A DNA stretch of 64,000 nucleotides from Paragordius varius (Eukaryota > Animalia > Nematomorpha): contig OZ176052.1 of NCBI GenBank assembly GCA_964247055.1, forward strand, positions 2,852,001 to 2,916,000. The letters are read 5' to 3'. A program made the translations under genes and the position numbers. Of this stretch, positions 6,101 to 60,000 are shown in pieces. Numbering within the stretch: position 1 is the first letter of the stretch; each line of letters opens with the position of its first letter. The notes below the pieces were generated by a model. The model searched no databases and had not been told where the DNA came from. It worked only from the letters and a program-made list of their open reading frames with translations.

Positions 6101-6759
6101 GGAAAGCTATGGACATAATAGATTTTTCTTTCTAGTATAATTTCTTAAACTTTTTATATTTTTTTCTTTTCTCATGATTTTCTGGTGATTCATGAGAATG
6201 ATGTATTGTAAAATATCTTTCAATATTTTATTTTTATATAATTATGTTGTCCTTACATATAAGGCAGGTAACAACATTTTTATTAAAAGAGCAAAAATTT
6301 TTTCTTCACATTTTCAAAAAAAGCGAATTTCATCGGTTGATTTACGATTTTTGGCATTAGATGGCATATTTTGAATTAATTTTTTCAAAAATAGGATATA
6401 ATTTCAATTATTCTATAAAAGGTTGAAATTTAGTGATGTTGATTTAAAAAATATTTTTTGGAAATTAGTTATAAAAAATGATGGGAAGTTTGGGTGAAAG
6501 GCTTGCTTAAATACAAAAAAGGACTGCAATAAAAATTTTAAAATAGTAAAGAAAATAGAATACAATGACAGAAACAAGTGTGGCAATATTAAAATCATAT
6601 AAATGTAGGTAAATTTTTCTACATTTTAAATTAAGAATAAAAATTACCAAAATTAAATCTAAAGAAAATAATAAATAAAATAAGCGAAAATTGTTTTATG
6701 TGTATTGTAAAAATTCATCAATAAAAAAATAATATAAATATTAATATTGTCATAGGGCC

Positions 6760-7150
6760 TGGGGTTTTATACACCAAGGCCATTTAAAATTTATATATCT
6801 AAAAAAATATTTTTAGCATTAGGCCAAATTTAAAAATGGTTTCTTTAGTTTAGGCGCATAATACAATTTTTTGAAAAAATATATAATTGTAAAAATCCTC
6901 ATCTCAAACTTTTTCGCCGCCATTTTTTTCTTTAATTTTTTAAATCGTGAATACAACACGCAAATAAATGTATACTATGGTTGATAAATATAAACAATTA
7001 ATTTTGAAAAGCTATCAAATCGCCTTTAGTTATTAATATATCAGCTGTTCGTTTCATTTGTGTTTTGGAGTTATCTGTTGGTTTATGTTTTATTTCTATT
7101 ATAGGAAAAGAGGGTTAAACCAAAACAACTTTCAAAAGAGTTTTTTAGTA
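6760..7150. repeat. Dispersed repeat family of unknown class, also at ~7935-8260 and ~52545-52930
   Basis: Shared blocks such as CTTTTT(C)GCCGCCATTT, AAATCG(C)TGA(A)TACAACA(C/T)GCAAAT and CAGCTGTT..TTC..TGTTTT recur at the three loci. Boundaries approximate. Confidence 0.55.
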
Positions 7151-7339
7151 TGGGAATAAAAAATACCCCAAAAAGTAATAGTGTGTTTAAAAAACAAAAC
7201 TTATATGCTTTATTGCAATTTTTTATAATAGCGTATGGTAATAAACAGCAAATGGTTGAAATTGAACAATTTATTACTATATTTTAACGTTATATTTTAT
7301 AATTATATGGGCAGACTATATTTATGACATACTCTAGTG

Positions 7340-7420
7340 CAGGGGTGTCCAAAAGGCCAGGGGCAGCATGCGGTAAAAAATTTTTACAGCCCGCTAAAAA
7401 TTTACTAAAAATCTAAATAA
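7340..7420 (+). mobile_element. hAT-type terminal fragment (CAGGGGTGTCCAA); related ends at 4345-4408, 13745-13812 and 31496-31725
   Basis: CAGGGGTGTCCAA at 7340, TTGGACAACCCTG ending near 4408 and CAGGGGTTTTCAA at 31496, each next to GCGGC(C/T) subterminal motifs typical of SPIN/Buster-like hAT ends. Confidence 0.5.
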
Positions 7421-18178: not shown

Positions 18179-21100
18179 GATATTTTTAATTTATTTTTCG
18201 ATTTTTGACAATTCTAAGAGACTTTTCAAAGTGCCTTATAGATTTTCGAGAAATTAAAATATTATTGCGATTTTTTACTATTTTTTATATCTATATATTC
18301 CTATATAAAATATTAAATGTTTATCCATCATTGTACATTTTACCTATGTAACATATTTTTATTGGATTCAAAAACTTTAAATAACCATAAATAACATTAT
18401 CTTATAATATTGTATTTAAATACTCTGCCTCAAATATTTTTTAGACTAATCTCCCTAAGCTGACTAAACTATTATAGGATATTTATACTGTTAAATCATC
18501 AAGAAACTATCTTATATTATAAACTTTAAACCTTAAATATCGTTACAAAGCGCTTATAGTGCTTGCTAGATCCTAAATTTTAAATTTGTAATGAAAAAAA
18601 TTAAAAATATACGATAAAATAAAATTATACTGAAAATTATGCAAAATGATTTAACAAAAAATATAAAAATAATCTACCAACTTATATTATCGCCAGTATA
18701 AATGGGATAGAGTGCATATAGATAATTTAAACACACACCTTTATAGGGCAAAAAACTTTAATGAAAAATAAAACCAAAAAACAAAAATAATCTTAAAAAT
18801 ATTATGTTCTCATACAATTTGACCAATTTTCACCTAACGCAGTTGCTTCCTATATTTTCTGACACGAATGTTTTTTTTTAAAAGACACTCCCTTAAATGT
18901 AAACTGTTATGTTTAAATTATTTATAAAATTTTTTATCAAAATTATTTAGACATATTTTTAAATTATTTTTAATTTATTCAGAATAGTCTCTTATTTTAC
19001 ATACTTTACTTTTTAACTGCAATTATAAGACCATCGGTTTAATTTATGGATTATAAGGTGGTAGATATTTTATTTTAATTGTTTAATTTTAAATTTTCTT
19101 GCATAATTTGGTGAATTGTTCATTATTATAATTTGATTATTATTAATTAATTTTAATTAAACAGTTTTACAAAATAACTTCCAAAATTTTTAACCATTAA
19201 TAGCGCCATCGCATATTTCATATGCCAATATACCTTTTAACCCAATAACACATATATCTCTTAGTCCCCTTAAGCACCACTTCTTCATACCCAACGAAAT
19301 AGAGAAATAATTCATAAAAACTCCAAATTATAGATTCCTAAGTAAAGAAAATAGTGAATTAACTACGAATATCTGGAAAAATTATATCCAAGCCTAAAAT
19401 ATGAATAATAGTTTAATCATTAAATATGTGACGCGGATCATTGATATTTCAACAAATAATATAACTCTGATATGTGTTAAAGGGTTAAGCTGTTTTTTGG
19501 CATATTAAATATGCCATGGTGCTTTTAAAATGATGTTAAATGGATTTTTGACTTTCTCTTAATTATTTTGCTAGTTTTAAATCATAATCAGATTATAAAA
19601 TGTAAAATACGCCAAAACGTCATGCAAAAAATTTAGATACTCCTCAAATAAATATCATATTTAAGAGTGAATAAAATAAACTTAATTTGAAAAATCTTCT
19701 TGGTGTCTTTAACACTGCGATTATTATTGACAAAAGTTTAATTATTATCAGTGATTTTTCGTTCATAACATTATATAACGGAAATTAAAAAAATTAAGCT
19801 GAAATGCGTACAAATATAAAAAATATATATTTTAATTTTCGACTTTTATAGTAAAGTTGGAGTCTCCGTCGTAAAAAGGTGCCAGAAAGTTATATTAAGT
19901 TGTTACAAATAATGTACGAATCACACACCTCCAGGATTAAAACTCCACAAGGTTTATCAGAGCCCTTTTCAATAAAGCATGGAGTCTACCAAGGCTCATC
20001 ACTCAGCCCCTTATTGTTTATAATTTGTATGGACGAGGTAGCCAAGGTTGTTAATGTGAGTTCAGGATGGTACTTAATGTATGCAGATGACATAATCATC
20101 TTGTCTGATTCATTAATTGAATTAAAGCGAACGGTAAACAGATGGGTTGTTATGCTGGATCAATATGGTCTGAAAGTAAACAAAGCAAAAACCGAACTTA
20201 TTACTTTTGGGGGTCCACAACATGAAATGGTAGTTGATGATAGTTGGGTTCTGAAGGGTAAAGAAAGTTGCAAATATCTGCGAGCTATGTTAAGTGCAGA
20301 TGGTTCGTTAACTGACGATATTAATTTAAGAATAAAGAGCAGCTGGGTAAATTGGAAGAAAATTTCGAGCGTATTATGCGATCGAAATATTGATGTTAGA
20401 GTGAAAGGTAAGATTTACAGTTCAGTTGTCCAGCCCTCAATGATGTATAATTCACAGACATGGGGTGTCAAAAAATCCGAAGAAAGACAATTTAACGTGA
20501 CTGAAATGAAAATGCTCAGAATGATGTGTGGGGTAACTAGAAAGGACAGAATCGAGAATAGATTTATTCGTGGGAGCACAGATATTAAACCAATAGTGGA
20601 AAGAATGTCAAAAAATAGGCTACGTTGGTTCGGGCACATTGAAAGGAGAGATTCTAATTATATTGCAAAAATAATAGATGGTTATATAGTTGAGGGAAAC
20701 CGAGGACGTGGGCGACCTAAAACAAAATGGATAGATACAGTAAAAAGAGAGCTAGCAGAATACGAGCTTAATGCAGAGGACGCCATAGATAGAGTTTTAT
20801 GGCGAGACAGGTTGTATAACATGACCGCTCTCACTAGTGAAAACATTAATAATAATAATAGTAAAGTCTTTATCGAATTTCGATAAAGACTTTACTATAA
20901 AAGTAGAAAATTAAAATATATATTTTTTATATTTGTACGCATTTCAGCTAATTTTTTTTAATAAATTTCATAAATACAATGCGTAATTCTCTCAATTTTA
21001 ATATTATATAACGGAATTTTACAATTGTTAATTTTAGTTAACGTTTTTATTGCCATCAACATATTTGGTTTTAGACGTTAATGAATGTTACGAATTTTCT

Positions 21101-40241: not shown

Positions 40242-43200
40242 ATGTTGCATTACCTGATAATTAATTTTGGTAATTTGCAAAGTTACTTTGTAAATCCTAG
40301 CAACAATAGAACCCATTATCATACCAATCAATTTTATGGCAGCTCATTCGGAGCACATGATTCATCCAGCAATTCAAATAATGCTTCTTTTTTAACTTCT
40401 CCAGTCTTGGAACAACCCTTCGGTCTGAGTACCATTACACGATGTATCCAAACATTTATCAAATTGTTTTACATTGTATTTTTGTTACAAACTTCATTAT
40501 TTCTCCTTGTAGATTCTTTCGTATTCCTTAAGGGTATCTCATTATTAAGCACAAACAATAAAAAATTTCAATCCGGTCGATCTCATGTCGAGCAGGCTTT
40601 AGTAACATTTCAGCACCGAAATTTAACGTTACCAATATCATCGTATTCTAATCAAACAACAGGGTGGACAGATATAGTTAATAATTTAAGATCAAATACC
40701 AATCCTTTACGCGATACTATGAATTCTCGTGTGGATGACCCAAACACAAATTGTAATCATTATCATATAACTAAAATACCCGATCGAAATCCGTTAGAAA
40801 AAAACATAGCAAAAAGATATCTCCTTAAATCAAACGATCATAGTATAAAAAGTTTTATAATAAGATCTAGAAGGAGTATTACCCAATCCAAATTAACTAA
40901 TAAATTTATAAGCAATCACACTTTTAATCGAAATAGATATCACATTAAGCAAGAGACAAAATTACCACTTAACTATAGCTATTCAAACATTGAGCTGACA
41001 AATTTGAACAAATATTTGCACAATAAACTCGTTAGAAAGCGATCATTGTTTCCGCCGTCTTTTCAAACGTTTGATAATATCGCCAATATTTATACACCCG
41101 AAACCGGAACAAGGCGACATAATCAATATTTTATAAAAAGTCCGTATGGATGGTTACCATCATCTGCATCGATTTCCCAAACAACAATTTCTTCTATCCG
41201 AAAAATATTGCAAAAATATCTCATAGCTAATCCGGAGGGTGAATATATTTTCAAGGGCAAACATTTATCGTTTCCTTCGACGAACGATTTTGGACACGGT
41301 ATACGTGGACCCTTGCCATCTTCGATCAATAAAAATTTTGGGCCCAGAGGGGGCAAAGGCAATGACATAATAAATGGTACCGTTACAAATTCGTACAAGA
41401 AAACTAATGAGTACACTCTAAACAAAAATATGACAACAAAATTACCAACAATAAGCGGCCCAACGATTGTTGATTTAAATAGTGCCGCCCGAGCCGAGGC
41501 ACTAAAAATAATTCATAAAGCTATATATTCCATAGATCCACACTTGATGAGTGAATATTCTGCCACGGAACAAAAGCCCGATGATGATAAATCTGGACCC
41601 GGTGTTAAAGCAGCTCTAGAAAAAAACACAGGTGTAGCTATGAAAAAATATTTGGGTAGTTCTTTTCCGCCACGATCGACGACCATAAAATCCAAGGTGG
41701 GCCCTAAGAAACCCCCCAAAAAGTATAAATTTCCCCAACATCACGCTCAATTAACGTCAACAACTGAGACGTGGATTACCAAAAATTCTTATACCATTAC
41801 TTCTACTCCGGCAGCGGCGTCCTCATCAAAGGAAGATGATCCAAATCAAACTTTGTTACATGACATTGATTTGTTAAAGAAAATTAGTAATTACATTGTA
41901 TACGTTATAATTGTCATCATAATTTTTTCAAATATTATGGTGCTTACGGCTTACCGAAGATTTCGAAAACTTCATAGCATAACCAATAGATTCGTAGTTT
42001 CTCTGGCTGTTGCTGATCTGTTTGTCGGTCTGAGCCGATTGTTACAAGAAATTCTCAACTATTGGTTTCAAAATGAACTGGAAGATTCGTATAGGTAAGC
42101 GGGAAATTTTTAAAAATTTATTTTTATTTAAAAAAAAAATTTAACTTCATCCTTGGTAATTTAAAACATTTAAGCTCAGTAATAAATAGCGATTTTTATA
42201 AATTTTAAGGTGAGTATGAGTCAGTCCTTGCATATATGTAATCAATGAATCAAAAAGTTTATTTATATTAAGTTTTTTATTCCCATCAATCCAAATTTGA
42301 AACTATACCTGGATTATAAATAAAGAACTAACTCTTTTCCTTCTAAATTATGCAAATTTAATGCTTTGGCGTCTAGCGTTTTATACAGGGGAAGGAAGGC
42401 AATGGCGGTAATATTTAGTTTTGCTTCAAATGCAATTTACTAATGCGATCATAGTTATTTATACTTTTTACTATTTAAATGTTTATTGTTTTAATGAGGG
42501 GCCCTACTAAGATCTAAGATCTAAGATCTTCAGCATAGCGCTAACTTTAATTGTTAACATAAAATAATTATTTATTTTTTTCTGAATACTCCAATATATT
42601 TTTTGTATACGTAATCGATTAATTTATCCAACTATTTCCAAATATAACAATTCAACACTGTAATTCTTAAAAATAAATATCTTTTGAAAATTTTAAAGGA
42701 CCTAGAAACAATTTATATTTGCCTCGATATCATATCTCGTATATTTATATTGCTTTTAATCATTATTATTAAAACAAAATCATTCTTTTATATATGAAAA
42801 ATAATTAAAATGTATATTAGGTTAATTCGTGACACATTTGCAGCCATGCTTAGAATTCCTTATATTTGTCTTGTTGTTTGTCTTACCAATATATCTTAAT
42901 TTAACGTGATTGCACTTAATTAAATTAATTTATGATCGTTTTTCGCAATTTTTTGGTACATCAGCTTTTTAGTTGGTAATTTTTTGTGAAGAATATAAAT
43001 ATAGAAAGTATTAAACACACAAATATGAAACGGTTAATTGATGATATATTATAGATTTTTGACATATTTATAATAAGATATGTTTTTATTATTATTACAT
43101 TACATGTTGTCACTCGTGAAAGCGGTCATGTTATACAACCTGTCTCGCCATAAAACTCTATCTATGGCGTCCTCTGCATTAAGCTCGTATTCTGCTAGCT

Positions 43201-46200
43201 CTCTTCTATCCATTTCGTTTTAAGCCGCCCACGTCCTCGTTTTCCCTGAACTATATGACTATCTATTATTTTTGCAATATAATTAAAATCTCACCTTTCA
43301 ATGTGCCCGAACCAACGTAACCTATTTTTTGACATTCTTTCCACTATTGGTTTAACATCTGTGCTCCCACGAATAAATTTATTCTTAACATCCTTTCTTG
43401 TTACCCCGCACATCATTCTAAGCATTTTCATTTCAGTCACGTTGAAATGTCTTTCTTCGGATTTTTGCCGCCTCAGGTCTGTGAATTATACATCATTGTG
43501 GGTTGAACAACTGAACTGTATATCTTACCTTTCACTCTAACATCAATATTTCACATAACACATTTTCTTCCAATTTACCCAACTGCTCTTCATTCTTAAA
43601 TTAATATCATCGGTCAACGATCCATCTGAACTTTACATAGCCCCCAAATATTTGCACCTTTCTTTACCCTTTAGAACCCAACTATCATCAACTTCCATTT
43701 ATGTTTTAATTAATTTAAAAGTACGATGCCTACGATTAATCTCACGAAGCCAAAACAAGTTGTAAACCATTTCGAGATTTCAAAAAGTTTTGAGTTGGAT
43801 TTTGTCTGTTCAAAAAGGCATTTTAAAACATAGTTTCTAAAATTTTCACATTATATTATTTTCTGAAATTCGGTCATAAGACGCCTAAATTACATTTTAG
43901 TTTATATAAATATAATTAGCGCTCACCGAAACAACCATTTTTATTAATTTTAAATTTAATTGCAAATTCATATGAAAAACTATATTAAGCCAACTAATTA
44001 ATTTATAAGATACGTTATTTTTACGAAGACTATTTTAATTAATTTTTCTTATTTAAAATATCGATAATTTTAACTTTTCTAAAAACTTATTATCGATATA
44101 CTATGAAAATATTTCATTAATTATTTAAAAAATTGATTATAGGCATGGGATAGAGATTGGTTATAAATAAATTATAGAGATACCGTTGCATAATAAGCTC
44201 ATAAAATTAGATTGCTAAATCAATGTAAATTCCAAGATTCATGAAATCCTTTTACCTTTATTATTTATTTATGATGAATCTTAAAGTACATAGGATAATA
44301 TATATGACGACGCATGGGAATATTGATTATAACCATTATAATTTGGTCTACATATTAAAGTTTTTCGCTAAATATATATATATATGGAAGGTAATCAAAT
44401 AATTAAAAAATCCTACTTTATTCTTCGATTGTTATTACATTATTATTAAGCTATAAAGAAAAAGTGCGAAACACGCGTATACTCCCCCCCTACGGGCCTT
44501 GAACCATAAAAGATTTTGGTTCCATGATTTTGCATTTAATTTATAATGTTACTTCAAATCGTAAACATACTGACATCAATATCGTTGAATTAGCTGGAAA
44601 TAGATAAGTATTGAATTTGTTTCAAAGGAAAATTGTATAATATTTTTAATACTGGGTCAAACAAGCTAGATATAAGAACATTCACAAAATAGATTAAAAA
44701 TTATATTTAAATTAACTCTTTATTAATCACTTTTTAAATTTACCCTTAAACATCAATTTTCCTTTAAAATTTCATCACTTTTCATTATCACTATTTCCAT
44801 TTCTCAACGTATTATTCACTCTAAAATAGGTTTTACGTTTCTAGGCAAATCGAATTTATAACCATCTGTATTTGGTTTATTTTATTTCTGTGCGATCCTA
44901 TAGTTTGTTGTATGGAATTTATTAACAAATAATATTATCACATTAAATTTATCGATTAATCTATATATTTATAAAAATGAAAAGTGGTTGCTTTGTGATC
45001 TGTTTCCGGAAAACCGGTAGACCATTCATAACCAAATGTCAAAAAAATATAATCATAAATTAATGCCCCGACAATAGCTTCGCTCTTTTTTTAATTAGGC
45101 CCCCAGTTCGGCCCACCCCGTGTAAAAAACGGTTTTTTTTTGAAAACACAAGTCCACAAAAATCGTGTATTTGAGACAATTTTACCGAAAACGTTTTGGA
45201 CCATTCGATTTTAAATATGATTTTTTTACTTACTTTCGATTGCGCCGAACATGGTCGGCTCGCTTTTTTAATTTACGCCCTCCTTTTACCCGCTTCCCCG
45301 TAAAATGCCACTTTTTTCAAAAAAATTAAGTCCACAAAAATAATTTTTTGAATCTATTTTTCGCCAAGTATGAGACCGTAAAAATTCAATAAGGATTCCA
45401 GCTATTCCCTGTTAAAAGGCAAAAATTTTATTCAAGCGTTTCTTTGATGATAGCTGCTGGTAAGGAGATACCCGCAAAAAACTGACACATCATATCGAAA
45501 TGGCATGCCTTTGGGGCCAAGGTCCAGAAAACCTATAAGGCCATATGAGTTCAATAACTGCTTAAAATAATACCCGTAACAAGGCAAAAATTTAGATCGC
45601 GCGGTTTTTTTAAAATTAGCCGTTAATTAGGCCCTTCACGCCCTGAAAAATATGCCACCATAGAATGATTTTTTAATTTTGAGGCAATTTTAAACTAATG
45701 AGATATGGAATCATTGATGATTCCAGGTATTTTCTGTAAAAAGGCAAAAATTTTTAAGCGCTTTTTTGTATCAGCCTTGGGTAAGAAACTACCCGCCAAA
45801 ACTGCGCCACTATATAGAAATTACGTTGTTTTGGAACTATTTTAAAGGAAACTTATGCCATATGAGCTCATTTAAAGTTCGAAATATTACCCGTAACTAG
45901 GTAAAAATAAGGTCAGGTCTTTTTTATTAGCCGTTAATTTTAGGCCTATATGCCCTAAAAATACGCCATCATATAACTATAATTTATACCCATGAGACGA
46001 TGGTCTCAAAGATGATTCCAAATATTTTTTCTATAAAGGCAAAAAATTTAATTCAGCGTTTTTTTATATAGCTCTATGGGTAGGGGTCTACCGGTTTAAA
46101 ACTGAGACGCCATACAAAAATGACATGGCTTTGAAGCTAATTTTCAAAACTTAAGAAGCCATACGAGTTCAATAAAAGCTTTAAATATTACCCATAAAAA

Positions 46201-49200: not shown

Positions 49201-50610
49201 ATATTTTAGCCAGTATTTTTCGCTAATATATTTTATTAGAGATTATAACTTCTGGGTAAACGACCCATTTAAATTCATAATTTTATTTATTTTTTAAATA
49301 AGTTTTTAACGTGCTACAAAAATATTTTTTTATTGATAAATTTTTGGAACATACATATTTTGGCATCCATATCTAAAGTTATTTTACTTCATTAGATGCT
49401 TATTCTTTTACACTTTTCCCACCACCATGAATGCCGCAAGCTTGTTGAGTTTACTCGGTGTTACCATTGATCGCTACATTTCTGTGATGAATCCTTTAAG
49501 GTAATAAAATTAAATTTGACATATTTTGTCATTATTATATGGTATATCGTTAAATTTTTAAGGTTTGTTCATAAAATTACTTAAAGCAATGATATTGTTT
49601 TATACCAGTAATCTAATTTTTTACCATAAAATTTTGATTAGGTTCGCGTTTTTTGATTATGAAAGATTTATTTTATAGCAACAGGTTCAACAGGCGGTCT
49701 GTCCTCTAAAATCGCCTTACGAAATAGAATATTATTTATTAAACATAAATCCAAAAATTTACATATTTTGGGGACGAACTAGCATAAATTGGTTAAATAA
49801 ATTATAGTAATTTATATTATGTCCATAATTTTTAAGATGTTTATTTTTATAATTAATAACATATTTATATGCCTATTAAATTTTTGAATGTGGTACGGCG
49901 TTTTTTAAGTTTAAAATGTGAATCTCGATATTTATTTTAGGCATCCTTGGAATATGGTAAGGATACATTTCTAGTTTCTACAAAGGGCAATATTTTTTGT
50001 TAGTTCTTTAGCTTTGACTACTATTTGCGAAAAATACTCCTTGTAGTATGCTTTTTGGCAATATTTAACATAAAATTAGCTATGTATATATGCTCATACT
50101 GCATATTAATAAAACATTATACCATGCGATTTGTAAAGTTTCAGACACCTTTAACGAAAGCAATATTTTCGTAAATTATAACATTAACACAGCCTTAAAA
50201 ATGATATTTATTAATTTTAAATTTAAATAAATGTTGTCAGAAAGCAGTCTTTTGATATCTGTTAATATTAGCGAAACAGAATTGTTAGTCCCAAATAAAC
50301 CTTTTATGGGAGTTTCGTTTTCTATATGGTTATTTTGCTGTGAGATTATTAATTTCTTATCATTTTATGAAAGTTTCTGTTAATGCCACCATTTACAAAT
50401 TTGTAATTAATTAAAAGACTAAAAAATTAATTAACACCTATATGTAATTTTAAGTGGCTAAGATTAACGATCATTTGGTAAAACAATCGCTATATATAAT
50501 GAATAGTTTTTATTAACCTTATATTGGTTTAGCTTTAGATTATTATTAAAAAAAACTCTAAGAATCGACTATATAAAGTTTTAAAAACATTTTTATTTAA
50601 CTGATGATAT

Positions 50611-50646
<36 letters not shown>

Positions 50647-53600
50647 ACTGTGCGACTTTTATTAAAAAAATTTCTAATCTTTATATGAATTTTATGTTAT
50701 ATCCTTAGATATCATGCTGTAATGACCGAGAAACTGGCTAATTCAATCATTATAACGGCATGGAGTAGTGCATTCCTTATCATTTTTATAGCATCGCACT
50801 TTTTTTTCATTAAACCGGGGCGTCATTTTTGTACGTATCCCATACATAAATATATACTGCTGGCATACTTTATCCTGTTTATCAGTATCTTGTTTGTAAT
50901 ATCACTCTTTTATATCCGTATCTTTTATGCTAGTCATAAACACTTGCTGCTTGCCATTTTTTCCAAAGATTTTTCAGCCCGACACTCTAGTCAAATGAGT
51001 TATAGCCCGGTCCCAGGTCTCAATGAAAACGCCGGCATTAAACCTAAATGGAAATCATCCGATTCGAGTGATATAAGTAAAAAAACTTCCCAATCTCCTA
51101 GTATGCCTGCATACTATTCTGGGGAATATAATCCAGAGGGCAATACGCAAAAACAGAGCACTAAATCACTGGAAAATCATTCAAGTGTTTTACAACCACT
51201 CATTGAACAGGTAAGCGTTGAAGAAAGTGAATCTAATAATATAAATAACAATCGTGACAATTCAAAAAGTAATGTAACAAATTCCTCATATCCAGCTTAT
51301 TATGCTGGTGAATATAATCCAAATAATGGGGTTATAGCGACTACATCCTCTTCTGTCAGCCAACAGCCTGCGAATCATAAAACTACCCAACAAGATTCAA
51401 AAGTATCAAACTTCAATAAGGGACAATTGGAAGAAATTGGTGCGAATAAAGATAAAGCAAAACCTCATTCCATTCTACATCACTCCACACAAGATTCGAA
51501 TCAGAAAAAAATTACGCCTCCTTCAAATACAGGGTACCCTGCCTTTTATTCTGGTGAATATAACCCAAATCCTCCCATCTTCAATCAAGATTCAAAGAAC
51601 GCCATAATGGAAAATAAGAAACAAACTGTACCAAGTCTAATCACGACTCAACAAATGCAAGATTGTCAAACTCAAAATACATTACCATCTGATGAAGATG
51701 CAATAAAAAATAATAAGAGTACTAAAGATTTAGATAATACAAAGCGTAAGGAGCCAGATACATTTTTAACCTTACCACAGGACACATCCATATTGTCTTC
51801 CCTGAATAATACAGAAACCAAAATTGAAAAGAATCAGAATAATTTAGATCGTGTCGAACTCTCGCCAGAGCCAATATATCAAAGCAACGATACCTTAACT
51901 AACCCGTCTTCGACAGATAAAAAGGATACCGTAGATCAAAATCAAAACACACATTTACCCCCTCATGGTATAATGAAAATACCACGTATATCATTTGCAA
52001 AATCTTTGGAAGATGATATGTCCACAGATCAGAATTATGATAATGCAATGCATTCATCAAAGGATAGTCTTAAAATTCACAAAAACAGTAATGGCATAAA
52101 TGATAAGGCAAACGTTGCCTTTGCACCGATAAATCCGTCTTTGGATTCCGTTTCCTCCGATCAAGATAACTGCTTATCACCACAAAGCAGTATGATGGGT
52201 GGAAAAAAAGATGGGAGATTTCTGCAAAAATCTCGTACAGTATCGATCCACGATGAATCAAAAACTGTAAATTTTTTAAAACGGCTATCCGCACCAGCCA
52301 AAAAAATTACGACAGGTAAATAGATTTTATTTATATATTATATTTATTTTAATCTTTTGTCAAACAGAAAAGAATTTTTAGGGCATTAGGGATTGAAACC
52401 TTAATCGTTTGTAATGGTATAGATTGGTTAAAATTTACACTTAGTATTGATACAGTAAATTTACTCTAAAACAAAATAATCCAAAAAAGTTCTTGACTAC
52501 TCTTTATGTCTGAAAAATACAAAAATTTATCATTTCATGACCTTTTGGTGTAGTTTTATAACACAAGCCATTGGAAATTTAAATATCTTACAAAATATTT
52601 TTATTGGGCCAAATTAAAAACTATGCTTTCTTTAGTCTTCTACGCCATTTTTGAAAAAATGCAAAATTGTATAAAAATCTTTATCCTTTTTGCCGCCATT
52701 TCTGATTTTTTTTCAAATCGCTGATACAACATGCAAATGAATGTGCTTTACGGCTAAATAATGTAAGTAATTAACATTGGAAAGCTTTAAAATACAAGCT
52801 ACAATATTTTGATTCAGCTGTTTGCTTCAATCGTGTTTTTAAGCTATCCGAATTCCGGACTATAGAGTTAAAAACTGTAAAATCTTTAATTTTTATCTAA
52901 AAGGTTTGATAATTGATTTCAACCAAAACAATTCAGAAACGAATATCGTTTACGAAAAATCAAATGTAATTAAGTGTTAATTAAAACACAAACTAAAAAT
53001 AGAGTTAACATTGTATTTGAAAGTTTTGAACCTAGGTTATGGTTTCAATCCTGGACTAAACCATATAAAAAACCATCATTTTATGAATTTAATTCTTATA
53101 TCCTTTTATATGACTTTTGTGATATTATTGTTTTCTATCAGACAACCTTGTTTTTGAGTTTTTTGACCATATATCATCTAAAAATAAGTAAAAAGTTTAA
53201 TCAGATAAAATAAAACATTTAAAAAATATTAATTGTGACAAACAGTAAAAAAATACGGACAAAACTTAAAATTATACAATCATATTTTTATAATCTAATT
53301 TTTACCCATAACTCTTCATTTTTAGTCACAAAACACAGATATATGTGTAATTCGCTTTAATATATATAACTTAGCATAATCAAGATGGGAAAAAGTTTGG
53401 TTTTTGTTCAAAAAAATATTTGTCAATTTATGATTTGTCCGTATTTTTTAGTTTTTATTCTACAATTTTTACATTTATTATTCATTTCAATTTTTTAGAT
53501 CACAAACGGCGTGAATCGGCAGGCGTTATGATTGCATCAAAAACTACCATAATGATTGCTTTTATAGTTGGTACTTTCACTCTCTTGGGTTTTCCAATCC

Positions 53601-54498
53601 AAGTTGCCGAATACGTTATGATATTCCACGATGATAAGATTAAAAATTTTAAAGCTTTTTACATTATCCACATAATCTTGGTAACTATGTATTATTCCAA
53701 CAGTGCTATTAACCCTTACATATATGCTTGGAAAAATCGAGATTTCAGGGATTCTTTCAAACGGGTCCTACTTTGTCGAGGAAAGGAACATGGATATCCT
53801 GATGACTTACCGCCTCGGTAATTGAATATTGTAAAATTTTGCAGACGACAATTTATCGACACATCAATCAACATTTTATATGATTATTTAGCTAAAATAA
53901 AAAATAATATAATCTCTGCTAAATAAAGGACATCTGCCAGCATATAAATCAGGAGTATTTTATTTGCAAAATTATCAAATAATGAAAAAATTTGCAAAAA
54001 TATTTTATTAAAAACTTGAAATATAAATATAACTTAATACTAATGAAATAGCAATGATTGGTGTTTCAAATAAAAGATATTTGTTTTCGTAATCTTATCA
54101 TAATCTTATGTTTGAATTTAACTTAATATTTTGATGGCCCATATATGATCGCGATACTATTTGTGTAGACCACCCCCGATTTAGTTTGTAATATTGAACA
54201 TGATACACTTTAATATCCACTGTAGATGGGTTAATTATATTTTTTAATTCATAGGTTAAATGTTTATTTTAACTCCTTTTTTTTCACGTACAGACATAGT
54301 AGTACTTTTCAAGCTCGTTTAAGCCGCATGTTTAGTTACATGTCAAAAACGAATCCCAATTCCGCTAATCATAATCATCGAAGCGGAAGTGTTCAGAGTT
54401 CCCCATCTTGGAAGAAATCACAAAAGGGTACAAATAATACTTTGTCTGCAAATAATTCAAAATCTAACAAACTTTCCACAAAATCTTCCAAGGTTTAG
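40242..54498 (+). CDS. Class A (rhodopsin-like) GPCR, adenosine/biogenic-amine-receptor-like orphan, ~1362 aa with very long N-terminus and ICL3
   Basis: Frame-consistent exons 40242-42094, 49396-49500, 50709-52315, 53499-53817, 54294-54498 (4089 nt). TM2 SLAVADLFVG, C3.25 plus TM3 DRY, ECL2 Cys, TM7 NSAINPYIY, helix 8 AWKNRDFRDSFKRVL. Start codon is uncertain. Confidence 0.88.
43087..43699 (-). mobile_element. Second, shorter and frameshifted copy of the same RTE LINE in GPCR intron 1
   Basis: Reverse complement aligns with ~20225-20850. Has a (TAA)n tail and an approximate TSD TATGTTTT at 43079-43086 and 43700-43707. Several small indels. Confidence 0.85.
44960..46430 (+). mobile_element. 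Complete non-autonomous Helitron (1471 bp) in GPCR intron 1
   Basis: 5' TC after A. 3' GC-rich hairpin GCTGC-GTA-GCAGC followed by CTAG then T. No TSD, no ORF. Confidence 0.8.
48869..49050. mobile_element. Tc1/mariner-type hairpin MITE
   Basis: GAGTAAGTATATATTGCTA...ATTATTGCTAAATAGCATAT pairs with ATATGCTATTTGGCAATAAT...TAGCAATGTATACTTACTC(ACACTG|TA). Confidence 0.6.
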
Positions 54499-57096: not shown

Positions 57097-60000
57097 TTAA
57101 ATTTGGGGTAAACCCATTTTGGTTCTTGGGGGAAGGGGTGGTAAGGCAGGTGGCGGATGTGAAGGGGGAGGTAAACTGATATCATTATTATTATTATTTT
57201 CGTTATTAATAAAAGAATTGAACGGACATTCGCTACTTAATTCATGACAATTATTTGGCTGTTGTTTTTCTTCAAAATATCCAATGTTGGCTAAATGATT
57301 ATCGCGATTATTGCTGGTATAAGGGTATGGGTCAGAAAAATGAGTCTCAGAATTAACCAAGTGTGGTTGTTGAGAGATATTATTGTTATGATTATTAGAA
57401 CAACCAAACGCTGTCCATGATTGTGAATTTGTTATCATTGGAAACATGTCTTTATTATCCAAGTGGTTGATGGATTCGGTAACATTGTGAAAATGAGCAC
57501 CTACAGGGTCTGTTGGATATTGTGTTTTGGTGGTAAAATCTAAAAAGTATTATGTATTATTGCGAAAAACAGTTTTATGCTACCATAATATACCATTTAA
57601 AGTTCAAATTCACCCTCGAACAATTCAAATTCACCCTAAAAATAAATTATGTGTTTTCGATAATATGATATATATCTTTATGGCATAGTATATTATTTTT
57701 TCAATATTAATATAATTTAAAACATAATTTTAATTTTCAAAAATATATAAAAATATAGGTAAATTTTAAAACAATATAATTTATTTGAGGGTGAATTTAA
57801 ATTGTTCGAGAGTAAATTAAAATCGTTCAAGGGTGAATTTAAATTGTATATTGTATATGATAAAACGTTAATTAAAAGACAAATATGTTTCGCAAATTGA
57901 CCATACTTTCTTAAAAAGGGATATATTTGAATATAAATCATCGTTTTGTTTTGATAAATAGATATGTAGCGTCATACATTCTCATTCAATATATCATTTA
58001 AAATATTAACTTAAATAGTTTATGTGGGAAAGATCAAGACATAAAAAAGAAAGTATGGTCGTCTTTATTTATAAAATTTAGTTTATACTTTATCGTCCGC
58101 ATAAATTTAATTTTTACTGTATTTATAAAACGGCTAACAGGGAACGAAAAATTTTATGTTATAGGAATGAAACAAACATTTGCAAAAGCCTATCGAAATA
58201 AGAGCATTAAAATTAAATGAACCATTTAAAATGAAAATAATTATATTATGTGATAAATTTTTATTATTAAATCAAAAATTAATGACAATTCTTTTCAAAA
58301 TAGGCAAGAAAGTAGCATGTTAAATATACAAATTTTTTTGGGCAAAATTTGGGTTTAAAACCCAAAATATTAAAAAAATTACATAAATAGATACAATATT
58401 TAGCAATCATTATACAAAAATAAAACAAATAAACTCCTTAATAAATACAAGACTGATGATGGTAATCTTATTCGGTATATACTATTTCATAAAAAAATAT
58501 ATATCAAAATTAACTGAAAATTTAAAATTAAATATCGCTTCCAATCACGTATATAGCAGATATATTTGAAAAGGCGTGATGTATTGAGGCTGAATTTAAA
58601 TTAATATAGAGTTTTAAGACATGCGCTCATAACCTATACTGCACACGTGAAAGAATCACCCTAAAAAACCATCTTTTTTACCCAATAAAAAAAATTATAA
58701 GGTAAAATTTTAATCGAATTTTACCATTTGGGTTAAGGTTTGATGCGTGCCAATTATCTTGTCTCAGTACGGAATCGCTGTCCCACACTGAGTTATAATT
58801 GTATTTATGATGATCATTGGTTGTATGCTATGTGTCAATTGTTATTGCCAAAGAATAAAAAATAGTAATTTTATTGATATAACTGTATATTTATAATCTG
58901 ATATTCAATAAAATGATAAATAACTTAAAAGACAAAAATTTTAAATGGGTTAATTTATTATGTATCCACACAACCTCAAAGGTAAGCTAAAAAAAGTATA
59001 TATTTTTTTTGGAATGTAGAATGACATATTACAAGTTTAATTAATTTTAAACCAAGAAAAAATATGAAAAATAGCCTTCAGCACCCCATTATTAGCCATA
59101 TTAATTTTAGGAGAAGATTGAACATTACTGTAATGACCTTTTCCTTATATCTAAATTATAAAAAAACACCGGACGCGCGCAAAACACAAAATTTAATGTT
59201 TTAAATTTATAAATTAGACATTTATTTATATTACCTGTTCTTGTTGATTTGTAGAAGGTATTCTAGATGATATAAAAGTGTTATTAGTGGGAGGCTGATC
59301 ATCAATATCAATAAGTAGGGTGCTTGGTTCATTCGAATGAGATCTCATCGTAAAATTTTGTCCAGAATTATCATTCCAAGGATCAAAGGTAGAGCGAGAG
59401 TTATTAGGTGTGTTTGTTTGTAAATCTATACCTTTTTATAAATAATATTATAACTATTAGAGAACAAAACTCTTTTAATTAATTCAAAAAAAAAGTTTTT
59501 CAATTAACCCGAATTTAATTTAGGTGGAGGTGGCCTTTTAGGCGGTAAATTTGGTAGTGCTCCTACGTTGTTTGAAGATTGTTGTAATTTGGTTGATTGT
59601 GATTTTTTGACAATAATTTCTTTTATTGGGTTGATGTCAGGGCTCTTTTTTTCGGTAGAAAAAGTTTTTTGTAACTTTGATACTGAAGCAGCCTTTTGCA
59701 ACGCATTTGTCGTTTTTGCGGCAATTTTATTAAACATGGATGATTTTTGAATGCCGTCATCATCATATGTTCCGATATTTTCATTGCAGTTGTTATCAGG
59801 TGAGAGCTCTTGACCAGTAAAATCTTGAAATGATTGGTATTTATTTCGATTGGCGCCATTTATTAAAGAGCCATTTTTGTCTGACTTAGGATTATTGCTG
59901 TTATTATTAGTGTTCAATAAATTGGTCGAATTATTTAACAGGGATGATGATGAGAATTTCCTTACAAACATTTGTTTCATGGCTTCAGGTTGAATATTTC

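Follow-up and report, generated by a model that had tools for sequence, protein, structure and literature searches.

Three copies of a tyrosine-rich ten-residue motif in the long third intracellular loop of a putative orphan class-A receptor from the hairworm Paragordius varius

Receptor gene and family

We analyzed a stretch of 64,000 nucleotides from the hairworm Paragordius varius (Nematomorpha; contig OZ176052.1, positions 2,852,001 to 2,916,000 of the forward strand), here referred to as the window; positions are counted from its first letter. The forward strand carries a gene of four exons for a class-A G-protein-coupled receptor (GPCR). The third intracellular loop (ICL3) of this receptor, between the transmembrane helices TM5 and TM6, contains three near-identical copies of a ten-residue peptide, PA(Y/F)Y(S/A)GEYNP, which are conserved as peptides. 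The parts of the gene are as follows, with intracellular and extracellular loops abbreviated as ICL and ECL, respectively:

40242-42094, + strand: exon 1, with the 5' end set at the first ATG of the frame; the true start may lie elsewhere
49396-49500, + strand: exon 2, with Cys3.25, TM3 and DRYISVMNPL; acceptor cattag/A, donor AG/GTAATA
50709-52315, + strand: exon 3; acceptor ccttag/A, donor CAG/GTAAAT
50938-52315, + strand: portion of ICL3 encoded by exon 3; it is dominated by S, N, K, T, D, P and Q, and disorder is predicted
53499-53821, + strand: exon 4, with the end of ICL3 (DHKRRES...), TM6 (FTLLGFP), TM7 (NPYIY), helix 8 and the stop codon

Exon 1 is an open frame of 617 codons ending at the donor AG/GTAAGC. 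It encodes an N-terminus of ~560 residues, which is probably extracellular and holds 9 NxS/T sequons, followed by TM1, ICL1, TM2 (SLAVADL) and the start of ECL1. Exon 3 comprises the rest of ICL2 ((R)YHAVMTEKL), TM4, ECL2 with its Cys, TM5 and ~460 residues of ICL3. The splice phases of 2, 2 and 1 are compatible. The open frame of the loop is coding, given a composition-based chance of ~1.6e-14 that 459 such codons stay open. At the end of exon 4 the stop codon (TAA, 53819-53821) and a plausible donor, G/GTAATT (53816-53825), overlap, and the gene may have a further 3' exon and a longer receptor tail. An (AT)n microsatellite is located in intron 2 at about 50617-50645; the acceptor of exon 3 follows ~65 bases downstream.

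The earlier note on this DNA had placed the motif in the giant ICL3 of a class-A GPCR, and both parts of this description hold. TM5 is encoded upstream in the same exon, and TM6 together with TM7 (NPYIY) in the next one. The four exons match Pfam 7tm_1 (PF00001) in the correct order, and the signature residues are present. All searches and folds were run exon by exon, and each exon alone stayed under the Pfam 7tm_1 cut-off of 30.5 bits: exon 1 covered profile positions 2-46 (residues 564-608, 26.1 bits), exon 2 positions 58-91 (20.7 bits), exon 3 positions 93-197 (residues 1-92, 17.6 bits) and exon 4 positions 167-260 (29.2 bits). The class-A signatures comprise Asn1.50 (FSNIMV), Asp2.50 (SLAVADL), DRY at 3.49-3.51, Trp4.50 (ITAWSS) and NPxxY (NPYIY). 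The cysteine pair is present as well, with Cys3.25 opening exon 2 and the ECL2 Cys in HFCTY.

Several core positions deviate. TM6 (53560-53600) reads FTLLGFP, in which Pro6.50 is kept and Cys6.47 and Trp6.48 are replaced by Leu and Gly, so that the CWxP motif is lost. In TM5 (50860-50930) position 5.50, counted from Tyr5.58, is Ile and not Pro. CWxP and Pro5.50 are common in the class-A family, although not defining. In TM3 (49396-49440), the count back from Arg3.50 in CLFFYTFPTTMNAASLLSLLGVTIDRY gives Pro instead of Asp at 3.32, and the gene is therefore not filed as a biogenic-amine receptor. A non-canonical core at 3.32, 5.50 and TM6 would fit an orphan with unusual ligand binding or activation.

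There is some likeness to the aminergic and adenosine receptors of the alpha-group. The best PDB match of TM1-2 is the beta-2 adrenergic receptor (5e-9), TM6-7 match the adenosine A2B receptor (3e-9), histamine H2 and 5-HT1A, and DRY, NPxxY and the helix-8 pattern F(R/K)xxF are shared. Unlike the alpha-group, the receptor has no Asp3.32, Cys6.47/Trp6.48 or Pro5.50, and it has an N-terminus of ~560 and an ICL3 of ~475 residues. Even the closest paralogue in the genome shares no more than 31% identity with it across TM6-7. Since it does not qualify as an amine receptor, lacks these core residues and has so distant a paralogue, we regard it as a putative lineage-specific orphan class-A GPCR.

The TM5-TM6 loop of ~475 residues is predicted to be disordered. 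Single-sequence AlphaFold2 runs on exon 3 gave helices at residues 2-33 and 44-93 (TM4 and TM5). Residues 101-535 had a predicted local distance difference test score (pLDDT) of <50 except for isolated residues, as expected of the surroundings of a short linear motif (SLiM). Small local pLDDT maxima coincide with the three copies, and within 108-359 every residue belongs to a run of pLDDT <50 except the last Pro of copies 2 and 3; both are weak signals of a single-sequence prediction. Basic residues flank TM1, TM3, TM5 and TM6; with a basic ICL1 and ICL2 and basic sequence at either end of ICL3, the loop is assigned to the cytoplasmic side.

Long loops of this kind are not special to the gene. 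Two muscarinic-like GPCRs of the same genome (G000:C6:4691870-4695106, L017, and G000:C6:369790-373050, L019), whose TM6-7 end frames of 1,077 and 1,194 codons, likewise have a polar, low-complexity ICL3 of >500 residues in a single open frame. No repeated peptide of at least 5 residues was found in these two loops. A long ICL3 is thus nothing unusual in this genome, and only the receptor of the window has the repeated motif.

Three conserved peptide copies in the loop

The copies are located within the single 1,607-base exon 3:

51106-51135, + strand: motif copy 1, PAYYSGEYNP, preceded by SM and followed by EG
51292-51321, + strand: motif copy 2, PAYYAGEYNP, preceded by SY and followed by NN
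51538-51567, + strand: motif copy 3, PAFYSGEYNP, preceded by GY and followed by NP

All three are found, exact to the base, where the earlier note had reported them, in the frame of the 535-codon open exon. The first copy starts ~57 residues past TM5, and the copies are spaced by 62 and 82 residues. Tyrosines at positions 4 and 8 are invariant, with Glu at -1 of Tyr8, and so are Pro1, Ala2, Gly6, Glu7, Asn9 and Pro10; position 3 is either Tyr or Phe. Ten of the 13 tyrosines of the loop are located in the motif or directly before it.

The longest exact peptide repeat in the loop has 7 residues. In 2,000 composition-preserving shuffles the longest repeat was mostly 4 residues and reached 7 or more only once, and three near-identical 10-mers are therefore far beyond chance. 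A degenerate DNA pattern for the whole motif matched only these three sites in the 110.5-Mb genome, as did a shorter pattern for YxGEYNP, with 0 matches of the reversed control in each case. DNA coding for GEYNP occurred 7 times (control 3), and the four sites outside the receptor gene were all in stop-filled frames, so that the core is present in no other open frame of the genome. The loop shuffles and the genome-wide uniqueness with zero control matches rule out an origin by chance. A dispersed DNA repeat or transposon piece is ruled out as well, there being no other genomic copies and the differences lying at third codon positions.

Two similar stretches of the gene were noted and are probably coincidental. 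NPEGEY at 41229-41246, in the presumably extracellular N-terminus, shares letters with GEYNPEG of copy 1. A single EPIYQ in the same loop (51868-51882) resembles the EPIYA-type tyrosine-phosphorylation motifs of bacterial effectors.

The codon differences between the copies that had been listed before (cct/cca/cct, gca/gct/gcc, ggg/ggt/ggt and aat/aat/aac) are correct, and codon 3 adds tac/tat/ttt. DNA identity among the copies is 83% in the motif and 22-47% in the 45-90 bases on each side, which is the background of AT-rich sequence. When the 45 residues preceding or following the copies were aligned locally (BLOSUM62, gaps allowed), the scores did not stand out from those of shuffled sequence, and a fraction of 0.16-0.86 of the shuffles attained them. 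By the method of Nei and Gojobori, the proportion of differing synonymous sites (pS) between copies was 0.45-0.60 and that of replacement sites (pN) 0.04-0.09, giving a pN/pS of about 0.07-0.2 over 30 codons; the ten codons flanking each side were saturated at both kinds of sites. Parsimony requires 8 changes among the copies, 6 of which are synonymous even though only 22% of the sites are (binomial P = 0.002). The two replacements, Y/F and S/A, are conservative.

Since replacements are few, synonymous divergence is high and the flanks are no more alike than shuffles, the motif peptide, and not its DNA, is under purifying selection. The copies are old and sharply bounded, and it is their amino-acid sequence that has been kept. 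Compared within the gene, the three copies stand out against fast-evolving flanks; for a SLiM this comparison is usually made across orthologues. The earlier note had considered the peptide rather than the DNA to be conserved, had called the spacers unrelated low-complexity sequence and had proposed a comparison of substitutions in motif and spacer. The first two statements are confirmed, and the comparison, run here among the copies, gave a low pN in the motif next to saturated flanks.

Three processes acting on the DNA were rejected. A recent segmental duplication is ruled out, the flanks being dissimilar even with gaps and the synonymous sites strongly diverged; gene conversion would have homogenized the synonymous sites too; and a signal at the DNA level is ruled out by the conservation at the amino-acid level.

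Word searches gave no relatives of the whole motif exon and no matches of the motif region alone (E up to 10) or of TM1-2. A phmmer search of the motif exon against 1.84 billion representatives returned 0 matches, an exact look-up of the open reading frame none, and the ESM Atlas only generic 7tm_1 fragment clusters. These searches were bounded by length windows of 0.55-1.75x the query and by the E-value that a 10-mer can attain. The searched sets leave out this genome and very near ones, and the blanks, which are explained by this and by the sparse sampling of hairworms, are no evidence that other species lack the motif.

A metagenome scan for A(Y/F)Y(S/A)GEYNP gave six single matches, all in unrelated proteins, on contigs of 37-51% GC. 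Four of them represent one family with KAFYSGEYNPDETS, a fifth belongs to another protein and the sixth lies outside an open frame. The four loci of the family (L005, L006, L007 and L010; 48-51% GC) encode a conserved protein with KAFYSGEYNPDETS(I/V)PDCWSS, which shares 9 motif residues in a very different and apparently globular setting and was taken as a chance match. The metagenome matches are at chance level and not homologues.

Further features of the window and the genome

Outside the receptor exons the following features were noted in the window:

19879-20886, + strand: fragment of an RTE-like retrotransposon without long terminal repeats (non-LTR), a 335-codon open frame that includes a reverse-transcriptase domain (Pfam RVT_1, 4e-18)
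about 43100-43700, - strand: broken RTE-like copy located in intron 1 of the GPCR gene, its C-terminal peptides almost identical to those of the first fragment
57097-57462, - strand: open frame, polar and of low complexity, with a proline-rich end (PPPSHPPPALPPLPPR)
59504-59980, - strand: open frame, polar and of low complexity, with a proline-rich end (LPNLPPKRPPPPK)

The last two frames had no match in a Pfam search. Probably both are exons of a single gene carrying ligands of the SH3 or profilin type.

The genome comprises 110.5 Mb in 44 contigs with about 27% GC. The mitochondrial genome is a single contig of 15,693 bp (G000:C44; loci L013 and L014), on which cox1 was read with TGA as a sense codon. 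At least 16 palindromes, perfect or nearly so and 60-212 nt long, were counted on it, and many of these fall within protein-coding genes; coding palindromes in mitochondrial genes are a hallmark of Nematomorpha (PMC6649704). In addition, the contig carries a 72-bp tandem array of units resembling transfer RNAs at about 6667-7383 and the gene block cox2-K-D-atp6-cox3-G-nad3-A-N-S1.

Possible functions of the motif and comparison with known systems

We tentatively favor the reading that the copies are selected SLiMs in the disordered ICL3 of an orphan class-A GPCR and together form a trivalent docking site, which would probably depend on phosphotyrosine. The docking function itself we infer from the anatomy of the motif. 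Three equivalent copies on a flexible cytoplasmic loop would dock one cytosolic partner and thus make the receptor a trivalent scaffold. A tyrosine kinase would switch binding on at the invariant Tyr4 or Tyr8, and an adaptor domain of the SH2 or PTB type would read the phosphorylated motif; both are suggested because the two tyrosines are invariant and Glu stands at -1 of Tyr8. Receptor clustering, signaling not mediated by G proteins or regulated endocytosis might be the outcome. The genome gave 16 SH2 exon matches from about a dozen loci, several adjoining kinase exons, and 146 PK_Tyr_Ser-Thr matches, and phosphotyrosine machinery is therefore present. A more specific version, in which an undescribed tyrosine docking class is read by a hairworm adaptor, the receptor acts as a trivalent scaffold resembling receptor tyrosine kinases (RTKs) or nephrin, and a phosphotyrosine complex is the output besides or instead of a G protein, is conceivable but rather doubtful.

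A number of points weigh against the docking reading. The loop was scanned against 22 common docking and sorting patterns: NPxY, FxNPxY, YxxPhi, PPxY/LPxY, pYxN, pYxxP, pYxxM, pYEEI-like, ITIM, ITAM, Cbl TKB, NPF, DPF/W, PxxP, YPxnL, TRAF2/6, LIR, PY-NLS, clathrin box and di-leucine among them. None was common to all three copies, which holds for the SH2, PTB, WW, SH3, EH, AP-2, ALIX, TRAF, LIR and Cbl patterns alike; the sole overlaps were a YPAF in copy 3 and, for copies 1 and 3, a PxxP at the edge. Ten conserved residues are long for a typical SLiM. The motif and its GEYNP core are unique to the gene, and there is no sign of a partner that reads other proteins. Position 3 tolerates Phe, so that this tyrosine need not be phosphorylated. 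Moreover, the selection estimate with its 30 codons is based on a small sample, and the receptor is known here from the genomic sequence and predictions of one species. The result of the scan, together with literal literature searches for the motif core that found no description, agrees with the earlier note, which did not recognize the motif from any characterized receptor.

An alternative is that the peptide acts without phosphorylation, either as an aromatic, Pro-bounded and turn-prone ligand of a folded domain or as a sticker that drives self-association or condensates. The Phe at position 3, the small pLDDT maxima at the copies and the lack of a fitting SH2 or PTB class are in line with this, and the concentration of tyrosines in the motif, set in a polar low-complexity spacer rich in S, N, Q and T, has the layout of stickers and spacers. 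For stickers, however, aromatics alone would suffice, which leaves the strict Pro1, Ala2, Gly6, Glu7, Asn9 and Pro10 unexplained, and three of them per 460 residues are few for a prion-like domain; we consider this alternative doubtful, on the unlikely side. The copies could also fold onto the cytoplasmic face of the receptor or onto the membrane and tune the access of G protein or arrestin, with no outside partner involved. A motif that is unique to the gene fits the receptor itself as partner, and the unusual core (no Trp6.48, no Pro5.50, Pro at 3.32) would be consistent with it, but a single contact would not call for three equivalent copies distributed over 180 residues, and such intramolecular regulation appears quite improbable.

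The motif might also be a functionless relic of an internal duplication, the only stretch that is not of low complexity and that was left after slippage had scrambled the flanks, and the loop is indeed of low complexity and without detectable relatives in the searches made. With a pS of 0.45-0.60 against a pN of 0.04-0.09, however, the copies show one or two replacements per pair where a neutral relic should show ~ten, and gene conversion would also have equalized the synonymous sites; a neutral relic is unlikely. Tyrosine sulfation was considered too, since the Glu-Tyr context with Gly, Pro and Asn nearby resembles TPST substrates. TPST prefers acidic and turn-forming residues near the target Tyr, and each copy is acidic at -1 with turn-forming residues around Tyr8. 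The topology rules this out, as sulfation takes place in the Golgi lumen and the TM5-TM6 loop is cytoplasmic, with the 9 N-glycosylation sequons on the N-terminus and basic residues in ICL1, ICL2 and at both ends of ICL3; the probability we leave to it is close to nil.

The trivalent docking reading is at present a well-founded hypothesis on one orphan gene of one species, with a proposed mechanism. The gene is among the very few leads on receptor signaling in Nematomorpha; these host-manipulating parasites form a phylum for which hardly any molecular data exist.

The proline-rich repeats of the dopamine D4 receptor form a tandem array. According to PMC2133121, which cites Oldenhof et al. 1998, the polyproline repeats in ICL3 of this receptor bind SH3 adaptors, e.g. 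Grb2 and Nck. Both D4 and the hairworm receptor are thus class-A GPCRs with repeated ICL3 peptides, which in D4 dock modular adaptor domains. Unlike the proline-rich repeats of the PxxP type in D4, the copies described here are dispersed, conserved only as peptides and tyrosine-rich, and they have no PxxP common to all three.

The view of the earlier note that docking of this kind would be atypical for a class-A GPCR was overstated, since reports of SH2 and SH3 proteins docking to the loops and tails of GPCRs date back to the 1990s (PMC2133121). Tyr319 of the angiotensin AT1 receptor is linked to SHP/Jak2 and PLC-gamma, and Tyr350/354 of the beta-2 adrenergic receptor to Grb2 (PMC2133121). In these cases, too, the tyrosines are on the cytoplasmic face of a class-A GPCR, and when phosphorylated they recruit SH2 proteins. 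They are single sites in the C-terminal tail that belong to recognized SH2 classes, whereas the hairworm receptor has three near-identical 10-mers in ICL3 that fit no recognized class and whose phosphorylation is only suggested.

The repeated motif of nephrin is YDxV. Several such phosphotyrosine motifs bind the SH2 domain of Nck, leading to multivalent clustering (PMC4238058). As in the hairworm receptor, several copies of one tyrosine motif are present in a disordered cytoplasmic region of a membrane receptor. Nephrin, in contrast, is a single-pass adhesion receptor of the Ig family, and the seven-transmembrane (7TM) receptor described here has a different motif and a partner that is only proposed.

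Both the docking of adaptors to loops and tails of GPCRs (PMC2133121) and multivalent phosphotyrosine scaffolds (PMC4238058) are thus already established. New are the sequence of the motif, for which no description and no scanned class was found, and the arrangement of three copies, conserved only as peptides, in the ICL3 of a class-A receptor. Should the motif prove to be a true docking site, it would add a new motif-domain pair to the catalogue. It would also provide a clean natural 7TM example of a multivalent, probably phosphotyrosine-dependent ICL3 scaffold, a layout otherwise known from single-pass receptors.

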